Below are positions 1 to 13,286 of a stretch of DNA of 13,286 nucleotides, piece by piece. The DNA lies in assembly GCF_000143415.4 (NCBI RefSeq), contig NW_003314416.1:1-13286 (forward strand), written 5' to 3'. Both the position numbers and the translations under genes were made by a program. Positions within the stretch are counted from its first letter, which is position 1, and every line of letters starts with the position of its first letter. Source of the DNA: Selaginella moellendorffii. Lineage: Eukaryota > Plantae > Lycopodiophyta. The notes beneath the pieces were generated by a model. That model saw only the letters and a program-made list of their open reading frames with translations. It made no database searches and had not been told where the DNA came from.

Positions 1-43
1 AAGAATGAAACATCTCGTAACCCGAACTAGTAGGGTCCAACAA

Positions 44-2434
44 GGTATGCCCCTTCCAGGCTGCGGCGCCGTGCTTCAGGACATGAACCAAGCCTCAAAG
101 GAGGACCTCCTATCCTCAGCCTTTGCAGACGACACAAGCCTGATCGTGGAGGGATCACCGGAGAACCTCTCAAGCGTCAAAAGGGACCTGGACTTTTTCA
201 ATGAGGCCATGGGATCGAGAATAAACTGGCACAAATCGGTAGGACTATGGCTCCCCCCCAGCAGACCTCCAACATGGGGCACGGAGCTGGGCTTCAAATG
301 GCTGGACACGGAGGAGACCACCCGCTACCTTGGATTCCAAGTGGGACGCCAGTATGATCCAGAACCCCAGAACCAAAAAGCAGTAACAAAACTAAGGGAT
401 CAACTCAAGTTCTGGGCGAGCAGAAAACTATCGTTCTCAGCACGCTGCGTGGTGGCTAACAGCATCCTACTTGGAGCGATCTGGTTCCTGGCAGCATGCT
501 GGAACATGGACAAGCGAACGATCCAGGAAATGAACCAACTCATTCGAACCTATGTCTGGAAAGGCTCCTCCTGCGTGTCGCGTGGTGGAGCAAAGGTCAA
601 CTGGCGGTCAGTAACACTTCCGAAGCACGAAGGTGGCCTCAATATTATTGACATCGAAGAACAATGCAAGGCTCTTCTCTTCAAAATTTTCACAAGGATG
701 CTCATGCCTGGCCACCAACCATGGAGAATACTGCTGCGAGCACAATTTTTGAAAGTCCTCCCGGACAGGAACGAGCACACCAGACAAAACTGGGCGCCAG
801 ACGAACAATGGCTCTTCTCAGACACCAAACTCAAAATGACAAAGGCTCACACGTTCTCAGGAAAGCTGTTCAAGCTCTGGAGGCAATTCAAGTGCAAGCT
901 GGAACGTAAACCACCTCGTACCAAAGAACAACTGGACCGGCAGCCAATTTTCCTGAGCAAACTCTTCGCTGTCAACGGTAAAACGCTCGGAGCTTCAGAG
1001 GATCGTGGCCTGGACCAGACATGCAGAGACCTGCACAGAGCAGGGATGAGAACCTTCGCAGAGGCAGACACCATGATCCAGCCCAACCAGGCGGCCCACA
1101 ATCGCGACCGCATCAGTACTTTCTACGGATTAACCATCTCAGAACACAGGATGCGTAAATTCCAGACAGCCTTTTTAGCAGCCAAACACGCATGCCTTGA
1201 ACGACTAAACCTGCAAGAGAATCAACACCATCGTTGGTGGAAGGTGGACGAATCGATTGTATGCACCCTCCCCAACATGGCATCGGGACTAGTCTTCAAG
1301 GTAGGACAGGCTGGACGCTTGTACCCCATCGTTACCCCCGAGTACGAGGACCTCCCCGACATGAGTAGGGCCAAACCGATCAGAGTGATTCAAATGGAGA
1401 AAAAAACTGCCAACGTTGATCCACTGATCCCAAAAAACCAATATGCCCGCCTCTACTGGTTCCGCCAACAAACCCTGGACGAACTCAAGTGGGATCCTGC
1501 AGAGTGGCATTGGAGGGGAACCACGTGCAAGGACTTCTTCCAGTACGAGACCAAGCTGGGCCGCAAGCTGATCAGGGTGCCAACTCGATCCTCCCTCATC
1601 CGGAAAGCAAAGGCCCAACAGATCCGTTCCAGGAACCACTCACACTGCATCAACAAGATCTGGAAAGGGCGCTGGTCAGCTAAGAACCGCTACTTCATGT
1701 GGCTGGCCCAACAAGAACGTCTTCCCTCCCTGGTCGCCATACATCTTCCGAACACAGCCTGCAAGACCTGTGGCGCCACAGAAACACAGCGACACATCTT
1801 ATGGGAATGTCCGGCAGCACAGGAAGTATGGGAAGGTGCAGCAGCGGTGCTCAAACAAACGTCAACCGGAGGAGCTGCAATCACATACGAATCAGCGCTC
1901 TGGGGTAGCTTCATCCAAGGAAAGACAAAGAATCCTGATGCATGGAAGTGGAGACACAATGAGGCCCCACACTTTGATCAACTCAACCAAACTCGGACAC
2001 ACATTACGCACCTCCACCAGGAGCTCTTTGATGCGCTTCGGGGATGCACACTAGCAGAGATATGGAAGGCTCGCTGCGCCAGGCTGTTCCAGGACACGGA
2101 CCCCTCGGCTCGAGCAACTATCTCAAAGGTTTGGTCCAGACTGATCGTCTCACTCGCGGCCCGCCTGGACACGCTGATCAAACGAGGCGAGGAAGGGAAG
2201 ATAGCGAAGGAGAAGAAGCTGTGGCCGTTTTTTAGAGGAAGAAGCGAGGCTGGCGAAGAAGAATGGACGTGGAAGCCACCAATATGGATTTGGCAGCACA
2301 TGTTCAGGAACGAAAGCACGTGTACCTCCCCGAGTCGACAGAGTTCCACATCAGGAACTTCGGAAGCTTGGAGCTCAGACATCACGGACTCGAGTACCAG
2401 TTCTACTTCGTCCCCCTCGTCCCACCCCCCCTAA
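44..2434 (+). CDS. ORF2 of copy A, 5'-partial (RT FADD motif and thumb, linker, zf-RVT-like CCHC finger)
   Basis: From GMPLP onward it is nearly identical to 7042-9432. The ATG at 5 lies in the poorly matching first 41 bases and is not a credible start. Confidence 0.9.
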   Translation, partial: GMPLPGCGAVLQDMNQASKEDLLSSAFADDTSLIVEGSPENLSSVKRDLDFFNEAMGSRINWHKSVGLWLPPSRPPTWGTELGFKWLDTEETTRYLGFQVGRQYDPEPQNQKAVTKLRDQLKFWASRKLSFSARCVVANSILLGAIWFLAACWNMDKRTIQEMNQLIRTYVWKGSSCVSRGGAKVNWRSVTLPKHEGGLNIIDIEEQCKALLFKIFTRMLMPGHQPWRILLRAQFLKVLPDRNEHTRQNWAPDEQWLFSDTKLKMTKAHTFSGKLFKLWRQFKCKLERKPPRTKEQLDRQPIFLSKLFAVNGKTLGASEDRGLDQTCRDLHRAGMRTFAEADTMIQPNQAAHNRDRISTFYGLTISEHRMRKFQTAFLAAKHACLERLNLQENQHHRWWKVDESIVCTLPNMASGLVFKVGQAGRLYPIVTPEYEDLPDMSRAKPIRVIQMEKKTANVDPLIPKNQYARLYWFRQQTLDELKWDPAEWHWRGTTCKDFFQYETKLGRKLIRVPTRSSLIRKAKAQQIRSRNHSHCINKIWKGRWSAKNRYFMWLAQQERLPSLVAIHLPNTACKTCGATETQRHILWECPAAQEVWEGAAAVLKQTSTGGAAITYESALWGSFIQGKTKNPDAWKWRHNEAPHFDQLNQTRTHITHLHQELFDALRGCTLAEIWKARCARLFQDTDPSARATISKVWSRLIVSLAARLDTLIKRGEEGKIAKEKKLWPFFRGRSEAGEEEWTWKPPIWIWQHMFRNESTCTSPSRQSSTSGTSEAWSSDITDSSTSSTSSPSSHPP

Positions 2435-2526
2435 AAATCTTGAAGAGCTCTTTCCCGGTTTCGAGCGTGTCGAAATCGGACTCTATGGTTTATAGAGGCT
2501 AAACTAAATAAAACCCCATTGACAAA
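2435..2526 (+). terminator. 3' UTR with two stem-loops and AATAAA polyadenylation signal (copy A)
   Basis: Hairpin 2455-2479 (10-bp stem with one G-U), hairpin 2481-2497, AATAAA 2507-2512, CAAA 2523-2526. Confidence 0.6.
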
Positions 2527-2936
2527 GTCGGACTAGACGCACGGTCCAGAACAGAAGCGAAAGACGACGAAGGAAAAGAAAAATGACGTCACCATCCCCC
2601 ACGTGTCACCAGGGAACATTCCCCCCCCCACGTCGCCATCACCCCGACAATCATCAAGAGGGCAGTCCTCGAACCAACACAACGTACGGCGGGAGAATCG
2701 CCAAGATCGCGTTACATCACCAAAATCCAAGGCGAACTTAAGACGGAGCACGTCCAATCACACGCGTCCACGTACTCCCCCGCCAAGAGCAGCAGCAACA
2801 ACCCTAAACTTGCCCTTGCCCGGAAAAGTGGAATCGAGCTCGAGAGCGACCGGAGAGCGGAAGAAAGCAAGCAGAGCAAAGAGAAAAGGAGAGGAGCATC
2901 ACGCCAACAACCAAGAGGACCGGAACAAAGAAGGAA
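2527..2936 (+). promoter_or_regulatory. Putative 5' UTR / internal Pol II promoter of copy B
   Basis: Lies between the upstream AATAAA and the ORF1 ATG. CpG-rich. Contains six ACGT cores, TGACGTCA, CACGTG, an E2F-type site, CCAAT and a telobox-like motif. Confidence 0.5.
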
Positions 2937-4979
2937 ATGCCGCGTACAAAGAACATGCGAAAGCGCGGTCCACCACTGGAAGACGAACTGGAAGAGCCCC
3001 CTCACACGGACATGACTCAGAACACCCCTGACGATGAGGAGAGACCTGCGGCGGCGCCTCGACCAGAAACGAGAAGCACGGGGACGAAACTCTCGATCAA
3101 GCTCAAGCAGCGCCCACCGCCGCCCCCGAAGGACAACGAAGCTGGGGAACCAGAACCAGAACCGACTCGAGCTGCTCCCTCCTCATCCGCTGATACAGTC
3201 AAGATAGCAAAGAAGAAGAACCAAACCGCAACGGGGGGCAAAAAATCAAAGGGAACTTCAGAAGCCTCATCGTCCAAGCAAACAATTATCCCCCCGCCGA
3301 ACACAACACCGCCGGCCAGGACGCCCACATTTGAAAGGATCCCATCGATCTCAGCGTTGGAGGGAATTGGCAAGTACGCGGACGAAACGCTGGAGAACAC
3401 GCCACAACAGATCTCGCCGGACTCACACTCTGCCTCGCCGGGTTTGAGCGCGTTGTTCATGGACACACAGCAGAGGGAACGAGTCATCCAAGCGGCGACA
3501 GAGGAGAGACAGGGGAAAGGGGGGGACCCGGAGGGGGATCAGATCGAAGAGACCATCCCAGCGCTCACAAAGGATCCAGAAACACCAGCCCCGAGAGCTT
3601 CGATTGGGACCACCAAGGAGAAAGCAATTCCAGCCGTCCCGCTCAAGAAGAGGAAGGAGTCGGACGTACTCTATCTCGGATGGACAAGGGTGGAAGAGCT
3701 AGACATGGATGTGAAGAAGACCGTTTCACCCCTTTCAGCTGCTGCACCGGCAATGTCCGACGTCACGGCACCAGCCCCAGGAGAACTACAAGTGGAGGCG
3801 AAAGAGGTCCTCATGGAACTGCAGGAACGTCAAGCCAAGGCAGCCAAGAACTTGATCCTGGCAATCTTTGAAGGGAACAAACCAGACCGGCAAGCAGCAT
3901 TGGAAGGGCTCGAGGATGGCTTCAAAGAGGCAGGAGTGTCGTTCCGGGGGAGACCAGTCACGTTCCTCGGCCGGAACTGCTATAGCGTGGAGGTGAGCAC
4001 GGAGAAAAACCGGCGAGCCCTGGTCCTCAAGCAGAGGGTGACGAGACCAACACACGAGTTGTTCTTCTACAAGTTTCCGCCAGGATTCTCTCCGAGCCAA
4101 AAGGACTTGGTTCACCGCCCAACAATGGAGCTGGATCTACTCGTCGAGGACCTGTGCGAGACAGACAACACCCCGGTGTTCCTGGCAATGATGGTGGAGG
4201 GCTTCGCTCAGTACTTAGGGAAACGGGCGACAAGGGAGGAGTCAGGGGACCAACTCATCCACGTTTTGTACACTGGAAAGGCGCCAATCCCGAATAAGAT
4301 CCGGATCATGGGGAAAGTGCACCCGATCCATATCCAGGAATCTAGGACGACGCCCCCAGCGGCAGCGACACCCTCTAAGCCGACGCAGGACCGGGGAAAA
4401 AGAAGGAGAAGCCCTTCGGCTCAAGGAGGAACATCTAGGCGACAGTCCGACAGAGTGTCAATGCGCAGGGAAGAAACACCGACGGACGGACAAGCTTCGC
4501 CTGAGAGGACAAGAGACCAGTGGGGTGGGCAGCACACAGTCCAACGCTCCCCGTCCCCAGAACGAGCACGAGTGGAGAGATCCCCATCAGAGGACCCGGT
4601 GCCGCGAGGGCGAGCGTCCTCCTCCCGACGGTTCAAGCGACTCAAAGTCAACCTGTGGCTCCATGTAAGCAACACACGTCCCCGGAAGTACCTAGCACTA
4701 TGGAGCGGCCCTCCGGTCGGATATGTCACCCCCACATTCCACATGGCGCGCGATCAGCTCCCAGAGAATGGTGTACACAGCTTTCTGGAAGCGTCCGAGG
4801 TAATCAAGGATCTCAGGTACCATGTGGAAGTTGACAAGGCCACAATCGTGGGCACCAACATGGAGCTGCACGCAGCCCTTCTCACCAAAAGCGGCGTCAT
4901 CCCCGCGAGAGGAGGGAGAGATCGCGAATTCTCGTGGGTGGAACGCGATCGGATCACTACAAACAAGGACAATGACTGA
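2937..4979 (+). CDS. LINE ORF1 protein, 680 aa (putative nucleic-acid-binding/RNP chaperone). Disordered N-terminus, DUF4283/RRM-like core, RS/SP-rich linker, globular C-terminal domain
   Basis: Long ORF directly upstream of APE-RT ORF2. The segment LILAIFEGNKP...FLGRNCYSVEVSTEKNRRALV...LFFYKFPPGFSP follows the pattern of plant L1 ORF1 DUF4283 (recognised by eye). Confidence 0.85.
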   Translation: MPRTKNMRKRGPPLEDELEEPPHTDMTQNTPDDEERPAAAPRPETRSTGTKLSIKLKQRPPPPPKDNEAGEPEPEPTRAAPSSSADTVKIAKKKNQTATGGKKSKGTSEASSSKQTIIPPPNTTPPARTPTFERIPSISALEGIGKYADETLENTPQQISPDSHSASPGLSALFMDTQQRERVIQAATEERQGKGGDPEGDQIEETIPALTKDPETPAPRASIGTTKEKAIPAVPLKKRKESDVLYLGWTRVEELDMDVKKTVSPLSAAAPAMSDVTAPAPGELQVEAKEVLMELQERQAKAAKNLILAIFEGNKPDRQAALEGLEDGFKEAGVSFRGRPVTFLGRNCYSVEVSTEKNRRALVLKQRVTRPTHELFFYKFPPGFSPSQKDLVHRPTMELDLLVEDLCETDNTPVFLAMMVEGFAQYLGKRATREESGDQLIHVLYTGKAPIPNKIRIMGKVHPIHIQESRTTPPAAATPSKPTQDRGKRRRSPSAQGGTSRRQSDRVSMRREETPTDGQASPERTRDQWGGQHTVQRSPSPERARVERSPSEDPVPRGRASSSRRFKRLKVNLWLHVSNTRPRKYLALWSGPPVGYVTPTFHMARDQLPENGVHSFLEASEVIKDLRYHVEVDKATIVGTNMELHAALLTKSGVIPARGGRDREFSWVERDRITTNKDND

Positions 4980-7900
4980 TCTCAGCGTGCTTTCATGGAA
5001 TGTAGGAGGCATTAGTAAGGACAGAGTGCTATGGAGTGACAAGAAGGCGAGGCTACGACAATACCTTCGCCAGTTAGAAGGAGTGTTAGGAAAATGTGAC
5101 TTCCTCTGCTTCCAGGAGCATAGAATGCAAGAACACCAGACAATCTTTAAGTTTTCACAAGGCGAACACTTTTGGAACCCCGCAGTTGGAAGGCGAGGAG
5201 GAACCCTCATCATCGCCAAAGGACCATGGCAATCCCTCGCCACCTCGCACCAGATCCTAATCCCGGGACGTGCTCACATGATAGGGATAAAAGTAAATGC
5301 CCGAACTATAGGCCTGTTGAACATCTACGCCCCGGCTTCCCGATCCACCTCACGAGCCCACTTCTTCCGAGTTCTGCAGCGTCATCTTCCCACTGGAACC
5401 GATGACTGGATCCTGGCTGGTGACTTCAATTTCGTGGATCACGAGGAGGACAAACAGGGAGGCATAATCCAGGATAGACGTACACGTGCGGAACGCCTTG
5501 CATGGAACTCATTCCTCTTACAAATTGGCACCTGTGACGCTTACGAGATCCCGGGTTTTGTGATACATGAACCACGCTTCACATGGCGAGAACGTCAACG
5601 CAGAGGCATACAACGTCGTTTAGACCGCTTCTACCTCACCATGGACCTGTGCATGCAAGGGGGGAAGTTGGACATCGACAACACCTACACGGACTTCTCA
5701 GACCACCGTCCAATTAGACTCACACTTCCCTTTCGAAGATCGAGAGGTCCAAGGAAGCCAATTGCCATACCCAAGAAGTTCTTTGAGGAGCAAGCCAACA
5801 ATAATCGGGCGCACGAGCAATGGGAGAAACACAAGGGGAACCTACACTCCTTCACCCTTCAAATCGCTCAAGAGGCTCGAGCCAAGATCCGGAAAGATAG
5901 GAGAGGCGTCTTTAACACAGTCCAAAAGGTTCGGAGTGTCCTGGCCTCGATCAACACTGACCTTCGCAGCAACCCGGACGACCCATGGCTACAAGCTCAA
6001 AAAATCCAGGTTAAGCGCCAACTGGAAAGGATAGAGGCCGACAAGATGGAAGCCTTCCTAAAAGCAGGGCACATCAGATGGCACGCAAGTGAACTTGCGC
6101 TGAACAGGGAGTTCTATCGATCCATAAGATCTAAAGTGGTCTCCCCACCTATGTTCGGATTGAAGGACGAACAAGGGCAACTGCACACAGAGATTGACGA
6201 CATGCACAACATGGCAGCACACTACTACTCCCAGCTTTTCAAAGAGGAACCATGGGATGAGGCCAGGCAAGAGAAACTTGAAAGAGTGCTGGAGCATATC
6301 CCGACCAAGTACACCCCAGCAATGAACACCAGAGTAATGAGACCTTTTACGCTGCGAGAATTAAAGGACGCCCTGGATGACCTCAAGGACGACAAGATGC
6401 CAGGGGAGGACGGCATGCCACCAGCCTTCTACAAACAAAACTGGGATTGGATCGGACCAGAAGTTCTCAAGATGTGGCAAGAAACCATGCGAGCTGGAAA
6501 GTGGCCAGAAGGAGCTACGGATGGGATCATTGCGCTGATACCAAAAAAAGGAGATATGTCCCACCTCAAGAACTGGAGGCCCATCTCTATGCTGAACACC
6601 ATGTACAAGATCGTAGCAAAAGCCTTGGCATCACGCCTCAAGCCTCTACTCCCAGAAACGATCAAGGAGACGCAGAACGGGTTCGTGGAGGGTAGGCAAA
6701 TCGTGGACAATCTCCTAACAGTGCTGCTGGCGCAAGAACACACCAAAGACATGGCAGAGCAGATTACAATCATTCTCCTGGACTTTGAAAAAGCTTACGA
6801 CCGGGTGGATTGGAAAGTTCTCTAGGCCATAATGATCAAGCAAGGAGTTCCTCTGCAGTTTGTGGAATGGACAGCATCCCTGTACCACTCGGCATCGAGC
6901 AGGGTTACGATCAATGGAACCATGGGACAGTCCTTCAAACTTGAAAGATCAGTCCGCCAAGGATGCCCCCTCGCACCATACCTGTTCCTGTTTGTTGCAG
7001 ATGCTCTGGCCTACTACCTCGCCCGACCACAGGGTCCAAAAGGTATGCCCCTTCCAGGCTGCGGCGCCGCGCTTCAGGACATGAACCAAGCCTCAAAGGA
7101 GGACCTCCTATCCTCAGCCTTTGCAGACGACACAAGCCTGATCGTGGAGGGATCACCGGAGAACCTCTCAAGCGTCAAAAGGGACCTGGACTTTTTCAAT
7201 GAGGCCATGGGATCGAGAATAAACTGGCACAAATCGGTAGGACTATGGCTCCCCCCCGGCAGACCTCCAACATGGGGCACGGAGCTGGGCTTCAAATGGC
7301 TGGACACGGAGGAGACCACCCGCTACCTTGGATTCCAAGTGGGACGCCAGTATGATCCAGAACCCCAGAACCAAAAAGCAGTAACAAAACTAAGGGATCA
7401 ACTCAAGTTCTGGGCGAGCAGAAAACTATCGTTCTCAGCACGCTGCGTGGTGGCTAACAGCATCCTACTTGGAGCGATCTGGTTCCTGGCAGCATGCTGG
7501 AACATGGACAAGCGAACGATCCAGGAAATGAACCAACTCATTCGAACCTATGTCTGGAAAGGCTCCTCCTGCGTGTCGCGTGGTGGAGCAAAGGTCAACT
7601 GGCGGTCAGTAACACTTCCGAAGCACGAAGGTGGCCTCAATATTATTGACATCGAAGAACAATGCAAGGCTCTTCTCTTCAAAATTTTCACAAGGATGCT
7701 CATGCCTGGCCACCAACCATGGAGAATACTGCTGCGAGCACAATTTTTGAAAGTCCTCCCGGACAGGAACGAGCACACCAGACAAAACTGGGCGCCAGAC
7801 GAACAATGGCTCTTCTCAGACACCAAACTCAAAATGACAAAGGCTCACACGTTCTCAGGAAAGCTGTTCAAGCTCTGGAGGCAATTCAAGTGCAAGCTGG

Positions 7901-9432
7901 AACGTAAACCACCTCGTACCAAAGAACAACTGGACCGGCAGCCAATTTTCCTGAGCAAACTCTTCGCTGTCAACGGTAAAACGCTCGGAGCTTCAGAGGA
8001 TCGTGGCCTGGACCAGACATGCAGAGACCTGCACAGAGCAGGGATGAGAACCTTCGCAGAGGCAGACACCATGATCCAGCCCAACCAGGCGGCCCACAAT
8101 CGCGACCGCATCAGTACTTTCTACGGATTAACCATCTCAGAACACAGGATGCGTAAATTCCAGACAGCCTTTTTAGCAGCCAAACACGCATGCCTTGAAC
8201 GACTAAACCTGCAAGAGAATCAACACCATCGTTGGTGGAAGGTGGACGAATCGATCGTATGCACCCTCCCCAACATGGCATCGGGACTAGTCTTCAAGGC
8301 AGGACAGGCTGGACGCTTGTACCCCATCGTTACCCCCGAGTACAAGGACCTCCCCGACATGAGCAGGGCCAAACCGATCAGAGTGATTCAAATGGAGAAA
8401 AAAACTGCCAACGTTGATCCACTGATCCCAAAAAACCAATATGCCCGCCTCTACTGGTTCCGCCAACAAACCCTGGACGAACTCAAGTGGGATCCTGCAG
8501 AGTGGCATTGGAGGGGAACCACGTGCAAGGACTTCTTCCAGTACGAGACCAAGCTGGGCCGCAAGCTGATCAGGGTGCCAACTCGATCCTCCCTCATCCG
8601 GAAAGCAAAGGCCCAACAGATTTGTTCCAGGAACCACTCACACTGCATCAACAAGATCTGGAAAGGGCGCTGGTCAGCTAAGAACCGCTACTTCATGTGG
8701 CTGGCCCAACAAGAACGTCTTCCCTCCCTGGTCGCCATACATCTTCCGAACACAGCCTGCAAGACCTGTGGCGCCACAGAAACACAGCGACACATCTTAT
8801 GGGAATGTCCGGCAGCACAGGAAGTATGGGAAGGTGCAGCAGCGGTGCTCAAACAAATGTCAACCGGAGGAGCTGCAATCACATACGAATCAGCGCTCTG
8901 GGGTAGCTTCATCCAAGGAAAGACAAAGAATCCTGATGCATGGAAGTGGAGACACAATGAGGCCCCACACTTTGATCAACTCAACCAAACTCGGACACAC
9001 ATTACGCACCTCCACCAGGAGCTCTTTGATGCGCTTCGGGGATGCACACTAGCAGAGATATGGAAGGCTCGCTGCGCCAGGCTGTTCCAGGACACGGACC
9101 CCTCGGCTCGAGCAACTATCTCAAAGGTTTGGTCCAGACTGATCGTCTCACTCGCGGCCCGCCTGGACACGCTGATCAAACGAGGCGAGGAAGGGAAGAT
9201 AGCGAAGGAGAAGAAGCTGTGGCCGTTTTTTAGAGGAAGAAGCGAGGCTGGCGAAGAAGAATGGACGTGGAAGCCACCAATATGGATTTGGCAGCACATG
9301 TTCAGGAACGAAAGCACGTGTACCTCCCCGAGTCGACAGAGTTCCACATCAGGAACTTCGGAAGCTTGGAGCTCAGACATCACGGACTCGAGTACCAGTT
9401 CTACTTCGTCCCCCTCGTCCCACCCCCCCTAA
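4972..9432 (+). pseudogene. LINE ORF2 polyprotein of copy B (APE endonuclease, RT, CCHC finger), interrupted by in-frame TAG at 6823-6825
   Basis: APE motifs: SWNVGG, CFQEHR, NIYAP, GDFN, FTW, RLDRFY, SDHRPI. RT motifs: PGEDG, LIPKKG, NWRPISMLN, QNGFVEGR, LDFEKAYDRVDW, RQGCPLAPYLF, FADD (7120-7131), YLG. Finger at 8758-8808. Track ORFs 4822-6825 and 6832-9432 are in the same frame, and the likely start is ATG 4972 (MTDLSVLSWNV). Confidence 0.92.
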
Positions 9433-9524
9433 AAATCTTGAAGAGCTCTTTCCCGGTTTCGAGCGTGTCGAAATCGGACTCTATGGTTTATAGAGGCTAA
9501 ACTAAATAAAACCCCATTGACAAA
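9433..9524 (+). terminator. 3' UTR with two stem-loops and AATAAA polyadenylation signal (copy B)
   Basis: Identical to 2435-2526. AATAAA at 9505-9510. Confidence 0.6.
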
Positions 9525-9934
9525 GTCGGACTAGACGCACGGTCCAGAATAGAAGCGAAAGACGACGAAGGAAAAGAAAAATGACGTCACCATCCCCCAC
9601 GTGTCACCAGGGAACATTCCCCCCCCCACGTCGCCATCACCCCGACAATCATCAAGAGGGCAGTCCTCGAACCAACACAACGTACGGCGGGAGAATCGCC
9701 AAGATCGCGTTACATCACCAAAATCCAAGGCGAACTTAAGACGGAGCACGTCCAATCACACGCGTCCACGTACTCCCCCGCCAAGAGCAGCAGCAACAAC
9801 CCTAAACTTGCCCTTGCCCGGAAAAGTGGAATCGAGCTCGAGAGCGACCGGAGAGCGGAAGAAAGCAAGCAGAGCAAAGAGAAAAGGAGAGGAGCATCAC
9901 GCCAACAACCAAGAGGACCGGAACAAAGAAGGAA
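9525..9934 (+). promoter_or_regulatory. Putative 5' UTR / internal Pol II promoter of copy C
   Basis: Identical to 2527-2936 except C2552/T9550. Confidence 0.5.
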
Positions 9935-11977
9935 ATGCCGCGTACAAAGAACATGCGAAAGCGCGGTCCACCACTGGAAGACGAACTGGAAGAGCCCCCT
10001 CACACGGACATGACTCAGAACACCCCTGACGATGAGGAGAGACCTGCGGCGGCGCCTCGACCAGAAACGAGAAGCACGGGGACGAAACTCTCGATCAAGC
10101 TCAAGCAGCGCCCACCGCCGCCCCCGAAGGACAACGAAGCTGGGGAACCAGAACCAGAACCGACTCGAGCTGCTCCCTCCTCATCCGCTGATACAGTCAA
10201 GATAGCAAAGAAGAAGAACCAAACCGCAACGGGGGGCAAAAAATCAAAGGGAACTTCAGAAGCCTCATCGTCCAAGCAAACAATTATCCCCCCGCCGAAC
10301 ACAACACCGCCGGCCAGGACGCCCACATTTGAAAGGATCCCATCGATCTCAGCGTTGGAGGGAATTGGCAAGTACGCGGACGAAACGCTGGAGAACACGC
10401 CACAACAGATCTCGCCGGACTCACACTCTGCCTCGCCGGGTTTGAGCGCGTTGTTCATGGACACACAGCAGAGGGAACGAGTCATCCAAGCGGCGACAGA
10501 GGAGAGACAGGGGAAAGGGGGGGACCCGGAGGGGGATCAGATCGAAGAGACCATCCCAGCGCTCACAAAGGATCCAGAAACACCAGCCCCGAGAGCTTCG
10601 ATTGGGACCACCAAGGAGAAAGCAATTCCAGCCGTCCCGCTCAAGAAGAGGAAGGAGTCGGACGTACTCTATCTCGGATGGACAAGGGTGGAAGAGCTAG
10701 ACATGGATGTGAAGAAGACCGTTTCACCCCTTTCAGCTGCTGCACCGGCAATGTCCGACGTCACGGCACCAGCCCCAGGAGAACTACAAGTGGAGGCGAA
10801 AGAGGTCCTCATGGAACTGCAGGAACGTCAAGCCAAGGCAGCCAAGAACTTGATCCTGGCAATCTTTGAAGGGAACAAACCAGACCGGCAAGCAGCATTG
10901 GAAGGGCTCGAGGATGGCTTCAAAGAGGCAGGAGTGTCGTTCCGGGGGAGACCAGTCACGTTCCTCGGCCGGAACTGCTATAGCGTGGAGGTGAGCACGG
11001 AGAAAAACCGGCGAGCCCTGGTCCTCAAGCAGAGGGTGACGAGACCAACACACGAGTTGTTCTTCTACAAGTTTCCGCCAGGATTCTCTCCGAGCCAAAA
11101 GGACTTGGTTCACCGCCCAACAATGGAGCTGGATCTACTCGTCGAGGACCTGTGCGAGACAGACAACACCCCGGTGTTCCTGGCAATGATGGTGGAGGGC
11201 TTCGCTCAGTACTTAGGGAAACGGGCGACAAGGGAGGAGTCAGGGGACCAACTCATCCACGTTTTGTACACTGGAAAGGCGCCAATCCCGAATAAGATCC
11301 GGATCATGGGGAAAGTGCACCCGATCCATATCCAGGAATCTAGGACGACGCCCCCAGCGGCAGCGACACCCTCTAAGCCGACGCAGGACCGGGGAAAAAG
11401 AAGGAGAAGCCCTTCGGCTCAAGGAGGAACATCTAGGCGACAGTCCGACAGAGTGTCAATGCGCAGGGAAGAAACACCGACGGACGGACAAGCTTCGCCT
11501 GAGAGGACAAGAGACCAGTGGGGTGGGCAGCACACAGTCCAACGCTCCCCGTCCCCAGAACGAGCACGAGTGGAGAGATCCCCATCAGAGGACCCAGTGC
11601 CGCGAGGGCGAGCGTCCTCCTCCCGACGGTTCAAGCGACTCAAAGTCAACCTGTGGCTCCATGTAAGCAACACACGTCCCCGGAAGTACCTAGCACTATG
11701 GAGCGGCCCTCCGGTCAGATATGTCACCCCCACATTCCACATGGTGCGCGATCAGCTCCCAGAGAATGGTGTACACAGCTTTCTGGAAGCGTCCGAGGTA
11801 ATCAAGGATCTCAGGTACCATGTGGAAGTTGACAAGGCCACAATCGTGGGCACCAACATGGAGCTGCACGCAGCCCTTCTCACCAAAAGCGGCGTCATCC
11901 CCGCGAGAGGAGGGAGAGATCGCGAATTCTTGTGGGTGGAACGCGATCGGATCACTACAAACAAGGACAATGACTGA
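9935..11977 (+). CDS. LINE ORF1 protein of copy C, 680 aa
   Basis: Identical to copy B ORF1 except G>R, A>V and S>L near the C-terminus. Confidence 0.85.
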   Translation: MPRTKNMRKRGPPLEDELEEPPHTDMTQNTPDDEERPAAAPRPETRSTGTKLSIKLKQRPPPPPKDNEAGEPEPEPTRAAPSSSADTVKIAKKKNQTATGGKKSKGTSEASSSKQTIIPPPNTTPPARTPTFERIPSISALEGIGKYADETLENTPQQISPDSHSASPGLSALFMDTQQRERVIQAATEERQGKGGDPEGDQIEETIPALTKDPETPAPRASIGTTKEKAIPAVPLKKRKESDVLYLGWTRVEELDMDVKKTVSPLSAAAPAMSDVTAPAPGELQVEAKEVLMELQERQAKAAKNLILAIFEGNKPDRQAALEGLEDGFKEAGVSFRGRPVTFLGRNCYSVEVSTEKNRRALVLKQRVTRPTHELFFYKFPPGFSPSQKDLVHRPTMELDLLVEDLCETDNTPVFLAMMVEGFAQYLGKRATREESGDQLIHVLYTGKAPIPNKIRIMGKVHPIHIQESRTTPPAAATPSKPTQDRGKRRRSPSAQGGTSRRQSDRVSMRREETPTDGQASPERTRDQWGGQHTVQRSPSPERARVERSPSEDPVPRGRASSSRRFKRLKVNLWLHVSNTRPRKYLALWSGPPVRYVTPTFHMVRDQLPENGVHSFLEASEVIKDLRYHVEVDKATIVGTNMELHAALLTKSGVIPARGGRDREFLWVERDRITTNKDND

Positions 11978-13286
11978 TCTCAGCGTGCTTTCATGGAATG
12001 TAGGAGGCATTAGTAAGGACGGAGTGCTATGGAGTGACAAGAAGGCGAGGCTACGACAATACCTTCGCCAGTTAGAAGGAGTGTTAGGAAAATGTGACTT
12101 CCTCTGCTTCCAGGAGCATAGAATGCAAGAACACCAGACAATCTTTAAGTTTTCACAAGGCGAACACTTTTGGAACCCCGCAGTTGGAAGGCGAGGAGGA
12201 ACCCTCATCATCGCCAAAGGACCATGGCAATCCCTCGCCACCTCGCACCAGATCCTAATCCCGGGACGTGCTCACATGATAGGGATAAAAGTAAATGCCC
12301 GAACTATAGGCCTGTTGAACATCTACGCCCCGGCTTCCCGATCCACCTCACGAGCCCACTTCTTCCGAGTTCTGCAGCGTCGTCTTCCCACTGGAATCGA
12401 TGACTGGATCCTGGCTGGTGACTTCAATTTCGTGGATCACGAGGAGGACAAACAGGGAGGCATAATCCAGGATAGACGTACACGTGCGGAACGCCTTGCA
12501 TGGAACTCATTCCTCTTACAAATTGGCACCTGTGACGCTTACGAGATCCCGGGTTTTGTGATACATGAACCACGCTTCACATGGCGAGAACGTCAACGCA
12601 GAGGCATACAACGTCGTTTAGACCGCTTCTACCTCACCATGGACCTGTGCATGCAAGGGGGGAAGTTGGACATCGACAACACCTACACGGACTTCTCAGA
12701 CCACCGTCCAATTAGACTCACACTTCCCTTTCGAAGATCGAGAGGTCCAAGGAAGCCAATTGCCATACCCAAGAAGTTCTTTGAGGAGCAAGCCAACAAT
12801 AATCGGGCGCACGAGCAATGGGAGAAACACAAGGGGAACCTACACTCCTTCACCCTTCAAATCGCTCAAGAGGCTCGAGCCAAGATCCGGAAAGATAGGA
12901 GAGGCGTCTTTAACACAGTCCAAAAGGTTCGGAGTGTCCTGGCCTCGATCAACACTGACCTTCGCAGCAACCCGGACGACCCATGGCTACAAGCTCAAAA
13001 AATCCAGGTTAAGCGCCAACTGGAAAGGATAGAGGCCGACAAGATGGAAGCCTTCCTAAAAGCAGGGCACATCAGATGGCACGCAAGTGAACTTGCGCTG
13101 AACAGGGAGTTCTATCGATCCATAAGATCTAAAGTGGTCTCCCCACCTATGTTCGGATTGAAGGACGAACAAGGGCAACTGCACACAGAGATTGACGACA
13201 TGCACAACATGGCAGCACACTACTACTCCCAGCTTTTCAAAGAGGAACCATGGGATGAGGCCAGGCAAGAGAAACTTGAAAGAGTG
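11970..13286 (+). CDS. LINE ORF2 of copy C, 3'-partial (APE endonuclease and linker)
   Basis: ATG at 11970 (= 4972+6998) with the same APE motifs. It is open to the window end and absent from the ORF track, presumably because there is no stop in the window. Confidence 0.9.
   Translation, partial: MTDLSVLSWNVGGISKDGVLWSDKKARLRQYLRQLEGVLGKCDFLCFQEHRMQEHQTIFKFSQGEHFWNPAVGRRGGTLIIAKGPWQSLATSHQILIPGRAHMIGIKVNARTIGLLNIYAPASRSTSRAHFFRVLQRRLPTGIDDWILAGDFNFVDHEEDKQGGIIQDRRTRAERLAWNSFLLQIGTCDAYEIPGFVIHEPRFTWRERQRRGIQRRLDRFYLTMDLCMQGGKLDIDNTYTDFSDHRPIRLTLPFRRSRGPRKPIAIPKKFFEEQANNNRAHEQWEKHKGNLHSFTLQIAQEARAKIRKDRRGVFNTVQKVRSVLASINTDLRSNPDDPWLQAQKIQVKRQLERIEADKMEAFLKAGHIRWHASELALNREFYRSIRSKVVSPPMFGLKDEQGQLHTEIDDMHNMAAHYYSQLFKEEPWDEARQEKLERV

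Follow-up and report, generated by a model that had tools for sequence, protein, structure and literature searches.

Strict homing of LINEs to ribosomal DNA (rDNA) is a textbook case in animals, where R1 and R2 represent it, and rDNA-homing LINEs underlie current efforts to write large DNA into safe genomic sites. Human SpIREs are LINE copies that stem from a spliced transcript and lack part of the 5' UTR. It is chiefly in the early-branched, Tx1 and R1 groups that target-specific LINEs have been reported (PMC4640811). The X-linked R1 tandem array of D. melanogaster, in which the units are separated by identical 33-base rDNA pieces and which occurs alongside ongoing 5'-truncated dimers, has been explained by unequal exchange (PMC5932611), and the L1-type Zepp and ZeppL elements of green algae insert into earlier copies, forming 3'-biased arrays of truncated units (PMC8226300).

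The window, meaning the whole stretch of 13,286 bases that was analysed, represents the start of the Selaginella moellendorffii scaffold GL377720.1 (2011 Sanger assembly GCA_000143415.2) and holds one LINE as a partial, a full and again a partial copy (A, B and C). An earlier note on this DNA had reported same-orientation copies with an exact 6,998-bp period and about 99.7% identity, and both statements were borne out: positions 42-6288 and 7040-13286 (offset 6,998) differ by 17 mismatches in 6,247 bases without any indel (99.73% identity), compared with about 25-28% identity at neighbouring offsets in the self-comparison of the window. The extent of the array, given there as 32-13286, stands from position 42 onwards, whereas bases 32-41 align only with a 1-base indel. 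The window is made up as follows:

1-31, no strand: bases at the scaffold start without alignment to the repeat, probably poor read-end sequence of copy A
32-2521, + strand: copy A, partial, cut by the scaffold start, with the C-terminal part of ORF2 and the 3' UTR
2432-2434, + strand: stop codon of copy A ORF2, which is open up to this point
2435-2521, + strand: 3' UTR of copy A, 87 bases
2455-2479 and 2481-2497, + strand: two 3' UTR hairpins, the first supported by cross-family comparison
2507-2512, + strand: AATAAA, probably a poly(A) signal, located 24 bases ahead of where the terminal 15-mer ends
2522-2537, + strand: junction A/B, 16 bases of the 26S rDNA landing site, in antisense (ACAAAGTCGGACTAGA)
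2538-9519, + strand: copy B, full
2538-2936, + strand: 5' UTR of copy B, starting about 385 bases into the element's long form
2937-4979, + strand: ORF1 of copy B, 680 aa, open, without a Pfam domain
4822-9432, + strand: ORF2 of copy B, with APE-type endonuclease (4990-5706), reverse transcriptase (6538-7341) and zf-RVT (8629-8829)
9433-9519, + strand: 3' UTR of copy B
9520-9535, + strand: junction B/C, the second 16-base landing-site copy
9536-13286, + strand: copy C, partial, cut by the assembly gap
9536-9934, + strand: 5' UTR of copy C, with start and splice scar as in copy B
9935-11977, + strand: ORF1 of copy C, open
from 11820, + strand: ORF2 of copy C, open to the window end

The window ends at an N gap (13287-15731 of the scaffold), downstream of which the final 652 bases of one copy lead into unrelated sequence and a second long N gap. 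Behind copy C, the stretch 16384-17269 of L003 weakly resembles a 2-kb non-coding element of another locus, L002 (44 bases, E 0.005). Since the array borders the scaffold start and an N gap, the number of units, three as assembled, depends on the assembler. The two junctions visible in the window are identical apart from a single difference 15 bases into the 5' UTR (2552 C, 9550 T).

The earlier note described the copies as joined seamlessly, with no recognisable host DNA between them. This view had to be given up, as both junctions consist of a 16-mer that is the reverse complement of a conserved 26S rRNA stretch. More precisely, LSU rRNA at about positions 2427-2441 of the Rfam model RF02543 has ACAAAGTCGGACTAG(A) as its reverse complement. 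Environmental contigs, at least 117 of them, contain the sense 27-mer, and there GAAATGAC... comes next, the site being uninterrupted; a check of one such contig identified it as LSU rRNA. Searches of the window for a host RNA gene between the units with Rfam (E up to 1) and ARAGORN returned nothing, a 16-base piece being below their reach. At three other loci (L002, L123 and L124), the motif runs unbroken and at the same base into antisense LSU rDNA (657, 528 and 1727 bits), so that the 3' junction falls on a single, invariant nucleotide of the large-subunit rRNA gene. The elements whose terminal motif adjoins rDNA at these loci are the non-coding element or a LINE of a second family (family 2), whose ORF2 protein is 50-57% identical to that of the window family (family 1). 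In all three cases the rDNA flank lies on the strand opposite to the element, unlike the sense orientation with rRNA co-transcription of R1 and R2. An upstream rDNA flank was found at none of the loci, these three included, where in two (L123 and L124) the 5' part of the LINE is cut by another repeat; nor does the window contain rDNA beyond the 16-mers. A putative target duplication of 16 bases is deduced from the stacks, in which the 16-mer flanks every unit on both sides. Because the motif is antisense 26S rDNA and copies sit directly behind it, the family is, judged from its sequence, an rDNA-site-specific LINE of the L1 type.

Stacking of copies extends well beyond the window. Copies of both families, with varying 5' truncation, directly follow the motif at four loci and also in independent reads. 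Locus L001 contains, in this order, a full-length copy, a 670-base piece of family 2, a copy truncated at element base 3505, and 8 bases plus a bare 16-mer; L002 carries copies truncated at 2656, 6786 and 4729; and in L004, family 2 is followed by a 310-base copy and then by a long full-length copy. The 670-base piece in L001 and L004 had been considered as a non-autonomous partner, an idea that was dropped when it turned out to encode 42% identity to the ORF2 C-terminus and thus to be the 3' end of the second LINE family. Read joints in sequencing run X7 connect 2528 with 5038, 2534 with 1758 and 2537 with 2142, and in run X20 the tail is followed by element base 4906. Throughout, the junction between 3' UTR and motif is invariant, while the 5' junctions show 0-11 filler bases or a clipped motif. 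Copies placed behind the motif of earlier copies, each with its own 5' truncation point, identify those junctions as separate insertions. Two families that differ at half of their ORF2 residues, together with a non-coding rider, thus share one landing site, as read from their termini, which would make the homing habit an old one.

From the fixed 3' junction and the 16-base site copies around the inserts, both directly observed, we infer the endonuclease, pairing and reverse transcription steps of a homing mechanism. Considering the position of the 3' junction, the APE-type endonuclease would nick the rRNA-sense strand between ...CTAGTCCGACTTTGT and GAAATGAC, a cut of the T-rich/A-rich kind as for L1. 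The freed 3' end could then pair with the last 15 bases of the element RNA, which would include these terminal bases because the poly(A) signal lies about 24 bases before their end. Reverse transcription would begin at the paired end, and the second strand would be cut some 16 bases away. An intact 16-base site copy follows each insert, and inside stacks one also precedes it; as an insert leaves an intact landing site, the next element can land directly behind it, which explains stacking. The earlier suggestion that the family inserts at its own terminus was therefore right in effect, as copies sit behind the terminal motif of earlier copies in all other loci obtained, but the reason is the 26S rDNA landing site represented by the terminal 15-16 bases. 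Stacking is a by-product of sequence-specific homing of the R1 or Tx1 kind, not of self-recognition.

The coding capacity conforms to the L1 superfamily, with Exo_endo_phos, RVT_1 and zf-RVT in ORF2 and the 680-aa ORF1 upstream; in copy B the two frames differ and overlap by 158 bases. The Exo_endo_phos match covers the entire profile (positions 1-225 of 225, E 4e-17) upstream of RVT_1, corresponding to an APE-type endonuclease N-terminal to the reverse transcriptase (RT). Among solved structures, human L1 ORF2p is closest to the RT (E 4e-21; R2 at 5e-6); for the endonuclease, the matches were relatives of bacterial exonuclease III only, with no L1 or R1 endonuclease among them. ORF1 gave no Pfam match, and its exact look-up in public assemblies returned no gene on record. 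An AlphaFold model of ORF1 residues 270-480 has the order beta-alpha-beta-beta-alpha-beta, but at a mean pLDDT of only 42.6 it is too poor for a fold search. ORF2 of copy B contains an in-frame TAG (6823-6825) at a position where most other copies have CAG or CAA. A variant genetic code or programmed read-through was considered and rejected: four other family-1 copies and one family-2 copy carry CAG or CAA here, and the change is a C>T transition. In place of the AATAAA of copy A, other copies have ATTAAA or AGTAAA, and every 3' end examined stops at ...GGACTAG(A) with no A run, hence without a poly(A) tail. The first 3' UTR hairpin is retained in family 2 and in the non-coding element, with changes on both sides of the pairs, in a comparison that covers few independent lineages; since the folding energy of the 3' UTR is no better than that of shuffles (z -0.5), this comparison is what supports the hairpin.

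The 5' UTR sets the window copies apart. A long form, present in L001, L004 and runs X7 and X15, begins 385 bases upstream of the 5' end of the window copies, which thus do without its first ~385 bases. In addition, a 221-base GT..AG segment present in older copies, apparently a canonical 5' UTR intron just upstream of ORF1, is precisely absent from the window copies (scar at 2917/2918). All other copies that reach the 5' UTR have kept it (L001, L004, L005 and two X7 contigs). We take the loss of this putative intron as proof that the window copies went through spliced RNA, and spliced intron and poly(A)-type signal together would point to transcription by RNA polymerase II. Among gene models, none outside the window has an ORF1 more than 93% identical to that of the window, and in read contigs the window-type 5' end was not seen behind any other sequence. 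The window copies are the youngest and most complete copies of the family. In run X7, the summed contig depth of the 5' UTR/ORF1 part is about 450-930, as opposed to about 80-140 for single diverged contigs, which as a rough measure suggests some 4-9 full-length copies genome-wide.

How the three units came to lie in tandem can be answered with moderate confidence. We consider it reasonably probable that the window is a trimer of a 26S-homing antisense LINE, in which one spliced, 5'-shortened copy would have landed behind another copy, and the pair would then have been enlarged at the DNA level by unequal exchange, as for the D. melanogaster R1 array. Near-identical units, the same junctions and two rare features in common (the ~385 missing bases and the lost intron) make a single processed copy followed by unequal exchange the most likely course, and the recurrence of the same 16-mer with the same neighbours at both junctions is a trait expected of a double insertion plus unequal exchange. 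The 17 differences between the units are mostly private CpG transitions (12 non-synonymous versus 4 synonymous changes, plus the one CAG>TAG change), and the array copies are probably now decaying as methylated repeats. These differences reveal no crossover point, and their pattern gives no signal for unequal exchange versus repeated insertion. Unequal exchange is favoured, not shown, because precise full-length insertion from an RNA 5' end at 2538 would give the same junctions. The same homing family could in this manner have produced the array by three separate insertions of one spliced RNA form beginning at an internal start at 2538, with no duplication of DNA. Truncated copies prove that independent landings can recur in one stack (L001, L002, L004), and a fixed RNA 5' end gives uniform 5' junctions in full-length inserts of site-specific LINEs. 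The long form, too, has an identical junction in L004 and in a contig of run X7 that departs from it at 2 of 30 bases, and translation would most likely use a spliced mRNA. We nevertheless regard this course as unlikely, given that every other copy reaching the 5' UTR has retained the intron, that neither the window-type 5' end, among the read contigs, nor a near-identical ORF1, among the gene models, was seen elsewhere, and that the missing first 385 bases are where an internal promoter would be expected. The requirement for an RNA 5' end at 2538, itself unproven, also burdens the notion that a single integration event sufficed, with the RT switching, at the 5' end of one RNA, to the 3' end of another and thereby producing a multimeric cDNA. 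The R2 enzyme performs such end-to-end jumps in vitro, and near-identical age of the units and identical junctions would follow directly; yet the junction consists, to the base, of the 16 bases that a target duplication would leave, and a multimer with the same junction was seen nowhere else, leaving template jumping improbable.

The tandem might also have been created by the assembler, if a single copy following a truncated one, or the two haplotypes of a single junction, had been looped into a false repeat. The window forms the end of a scaffold and has N gaps as its boundaries, the 2011 assembly is known to contain both haplotypes, and in run X1 the contigs are broken at the variant base 2552; the two junction-proximal versions that therefore exist could be alleles. 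Against this, the 13.3 kb are contiguous without any N, scattered differences at 17 sites set the units apart, each with a derived state of its own, and the divergence of the units, 0.27%, is below that between the two haplotypes, which we take to be about 1.5%. Moreover, the tail-to-head junction is present in read-derived contigs, of which the single junction-crossing one from the best DNA run reaches 15 bases past and may derive from the source data. An artefact hence seems about as doubtful as template jumping. The earlier note had further proposed a 7-kb satellite with a structural role at a centromere or telomere, as in Zepp or HeT-A/TART. The head-to-tail arrangement at a scaffold end, with the 5' ends facing that end, would suit such a role, as would a short palindromic block of telomere repeats that cuts off one family copy in L004. 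The window itself is devoid of telomere repeats, the X7 depth speaks for the above handful of full-length copies, telomeres of S. moellendorffii are to our understanding ordinary TTTAGGG, and stacks occur on at least five scaffolds, several of them large, next to orphan rDNA pieces and other transposons; a structural satellite is thus the least credible of these explanations, and a circular intermediate, also raised in the note, has nothing in its favour.

Our literature search found no description of a plant LINE with rDNA homing, nor any paper quoting this site. It is conceivable, and we put it forward tentatively, that a land-plant L1-type lineage independently evolved R1-like antisense homing to an unreported 26S site, with gene-like transcription and the RNA tail as guide, as an old habit that was active until recently. 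Copies differing by just 0.3% suggest such recent activity. If still mobile, the family would offer an enzyme native to plants for the insertion of several kilobases at a multicopy site that is defined and safe. It would represent a second, independent homing solution in the L1 superfamily, combining a T-rich/A-rich nick with a 15-base RNA-to-target match, and makes it testable whether specificity resides in the endonuclease or in the RNA tail.

The family can be compared with several known systems. Human SpIREs resemble the window copies in their origin from spliced RNA, but the segment missing in the spikemoss copies has the features of a canonical GT..AG intron of 221 bases, located immediately before ORF1, and only the window array showed the spliced form. 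Zepp likewise is a green-lineage L1-type element that stacks on earlier copies; in contrast to the spikemoss family, which targets a defined 15-16-base rDNA sequence, lacks poly(A) and forms stacks at several places, Zepp targets its own copies, has poly(A) tails and forms one cluster per chromosome, the presumed centromere. With the Tx1 group (Tx1, Keno, Mutsu, Kibi, Koshi, Dewa) the family shares membership in the L1 superfamily, an APE endonuclease and strict targeting of multicopy RNA genes or repeats; we know of no Tx1-group element that targets 26S rDNA and of none from a plant, and our search of the literature found no report of either. R1 is also an APE-type LINE with one fixed site in the large-subunit rRNA gene, from which the spikemoss site, going by the R1 sequence and the Rfam alignment, presumably lies about 75 model positions downstream. 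The two would have in common a short rDNA target duplication (in S. moellendorffii deduced from the stacks), and R1Bm, too, is considered to use target-matching 3' sequence as a guide for priming. The spikemoss element differs from R1 in its plant host, in its antisense orientation, which precludes co-transcription with rRNA, in its poly(A)-type signal and spliced 5' UTR intron, and in an RT closest to L1 ORF2p among solved structures, accompanied by a plant-type zf-RVT; going by these closest structures and the zf-RVT, membership in the R1 clade looks unlikely. Both, finally, form head-to-tail arrays with identical rDNA spacers, of 33 bases in R1 and 16 bases here, and the window array may be seen as a plant version, on a small scale, of the Drosophila R1 array, in which a homing element seeds a tandem repeat.

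Superposition of window positions 42-6288 on 7040-13286, which lie exactly 6,998 bases apart, gave 17 mismatches and no indels (99.73% identity), with neighbouring shifts falling to chance-level identity; the same spacing was reported by the repeat finder, and the ORF map recurs with this period. The partial, full and partial copies in a single orientation described in the earlier note are thus borne out (copy A, 32-2521; copy B, 2538-9519; copy C, 9536-13286; positions 1-31 lie outside the repeat). The element proper comprises 6,982 bases. The accompanying claim that no recognisable host DNA separates the copies was wrong, as a copy of a 26S rDNA site lies at each joint:

2522-2537, antisense 26S rDNA, 16-base landing-site copy between copies A and B
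9520-9535, antisense 26S rDNA, 16-base landing-site copy between copies B and C

Since the window is identical to the first 13,286 bases of the 278-kb scaffold GL377720.1 (Sanger assembly GCA_000143415.2) and is bounded at its end by an N gap, the number of units depends on the assembler. Past this gap, a copy resumes for its final 652 bases (99.7% identical); 886 unrelated bases then separate it from a second gap, which exceeds 9 kb.

The long ORF (ORF2) encodes an APE-type endonuclease, a reverse transcriptase and a zf-RVT domain (Pfam), while a Pfam search with the upstream ORF1 (680 aa) gave no domain; the two share 158 bases, read in different frames (4822-4979). The nearest relatives of both are Selaginella moellendorffii gene models and the nearest solved reverse transcriptase is human L1 ORF2p; the protein is of L1 type, its zf-RVT domain of plant type. 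A single in-frame TAG (6823-6825), a CAG>TAG change in copy B, interrupts ORF2. The same change was seen in a second, 91% identical copy (locus L002, 8107-8109), reflecting either recurrent C>T at this codon or shared descent.

Family copies that are 91-96% identical occur at four other loci of this assembly. The 3' end of every copy at these loci reads ...CCCCATTG ACAAAGTCGGACTAG, and no poly(A) tail was seen at copy 3' ends in the window or at the other loci. The next element adjoins each such 3' end directly, starting at a different internal position each time:

Joints behind element 3' ends
L001: start at element base 3505; also a bare 16-mer after 8 filler bases
L002: starts at element bases 2656, 6786 and 4729
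L004: a 310-base copy
Contigs of sequencing run X7: 2528>5038, 2534>1758, 2537>2142, with 1-11 filler bases
Contigs of run X20: tail joined to element base 4906
Contigs of run X15, from a second organism: tail joined to the same piece of family 2, a related LINE, as in L001

Unequal crossing-over cannot produce differing truncation points, and these junctions therefore represent separate insertions. A family consisting mostly of solo copies with normal tails, the pattern that the earlier note had held against its own reading, was not what we found: copies are stacked and lack poly(A).

At L002, the last motif of the stack runs unbroken into opposite-strand large-subunit rDNA (657 bits); the Rfam alignment puts the 15-mer near model positions 2427-2441. 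At L123 and L124, family 2 (ORF2 50-57% identical) likewise ends in this motif, with perfectly matching antisense 26S sequence behind it. At least 117 environmental contigs contain a sense-strand 27-mer spanning the site; in them it continues into GAAATGAC..., as in an uninterrupted rRNA gene. Behind ...CTAG, 7 of 10 junctions have an A, as does the rDNA, which makes the site 16 bases long. The rDNA behind the L002 stack (15363-16758) is a scrambled orphan piece, in which about 0.8 kb of large-subunit sequence is joined to a same-strand small-subunit fragment.

Other repeats were encountered at these loci. A 551-base repeat ending in ...TTACA (L123:4657-5207; L123:17447-17997, inverted; L124:5495-6045) truncates the family-2 LINE within its 5' part, at a different point in L123 than in L124; in L123, two inverted copies of the repeat enclose the LINE together with its rDNA. 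The repeat is probably the terminus of some other mobile element. A more distant LINE family (ORF2 40-50% identical) is followed by a repeat of about 80 bases with ...AAAATGGGACTAG (L125:12780-12860), which recurs inverted, on the opposite strand, just upstream of a family-1 copy (L005:9480-9560) and may be another tail or landing-site system. At L004:16449-16500, a 92% identical LINE copy is cut off at element base 6825 by a short palindromic telomere-repeat block, (TTTAGGG)3 TTTAAA (CCCTAAA)3, with unrelated sequence beyond; either a break that was healed and fused or the terminus of another element could account for it.

The 3' junction with rDNA is fixed and the join of 3' UTR and motif invariant, while 5' junctions vary (clipped motif, filler bases); a single landing site is common to two diverged families and a non-coding element. 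The first nick would separate TTTGT from GAAAT on the rRNA-sense strand, resembling the cut of L1 between T-rich and A-rich sequence, and the free end would be complementary to the element RNA over its final 15 bases. These bases would be part of the RNA because an AATAAA or ATTAAA motif lies about 24 bases before their end. A second-strand cut about 16 bases off would duplicate the site, leaving a new site copy behind each insert. Both families retain a hairpin in the 3' UTR, with both partners changed in 4 of 16 predicted pairs, albeit across few lineages; the folding energy by itself is unremarkable. This conservation fits a reverse transcriptase that recognizes its own 3' UTR.

The window copies have a special form. 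At both junctions, the 16-mer is joined to the same internal base, 2538; a long full-length form has about 385 extra 5' bases (L001 from 722, L004 from 8967, X7 and X15 contigs). The 5' UTR of the family contains a canonical GT..AG intron of 221 bases, placed 19 bases before ORF1 begins and kept by older copies:

L001:1488-1708, 221-base segment present
L004:9760-9980, present
L005, about 9613-9833, present
Two X7 contigs, present
Window 2917/2918 and 9915/9916, absent to the base

From this precise absence it follows that the window copies descend from spliced RNA; they are the full-length, spliced, tandem form of the family. Of the 17 differences, 12 are non-synonymous and 4 synonymous, and most are private CpG changes (C>T or G>A); they represent neutral decay of young repeats, which are probably methylated.

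One founding copy followed by DNA-level amplification is the simplest reading of the trimer, since its two junctions match each other, unlike the independent ones elsewhere, which all differ, two rare features are common to all units, and comparison of gene models disclosed no other with a near-identical ORF1. Three precise insertions of one RNA form appear unlikely yet deserve some weight. Multimeric cDNA is a far more doubtful source, and an assembly loop equally so. No crossover signal was found among the 17 differences. A precedent for founding and amplification is the R1 array of D. melanogaster, in which identical 33-base rDNA duplications separate the units, explained as double insertion and subsequent unequal exchange (PMC5932611).

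The earlier suggestion of a 7-kb satellite at a centromere or telomere was not supported: the window contains no telomere repeats, and the X7 depth profile is the usual one of a LINE and does not look like that of such a satellite. Summed contig depth, which is not copy number and is to be read as an order of magnitude only, was about 450-930 over 5' UTR and ORF1, 1,750-5,600 over ORF2 and up to about 11,000 over the final kilobase, compared with about 80-140 for single diverged contigs; this suggests few full-length and many truncated copies.

Our search of the literature found neither a description of a plant rDNA-homing LINE nor a paper quoting this 26S site. Target-specific LINEs reported so far belong mainly to the early-branched, Tx1 and R1 groups (PMC4640811). 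Zepp targets its own earlier copies rather than a defined host sequence (PMC8226300), whereas family 1 targets a defined rDNA site. In this respect it behaves like R1, from which it differs by its antisense orientation, its poly(A)-type signal and its intron.
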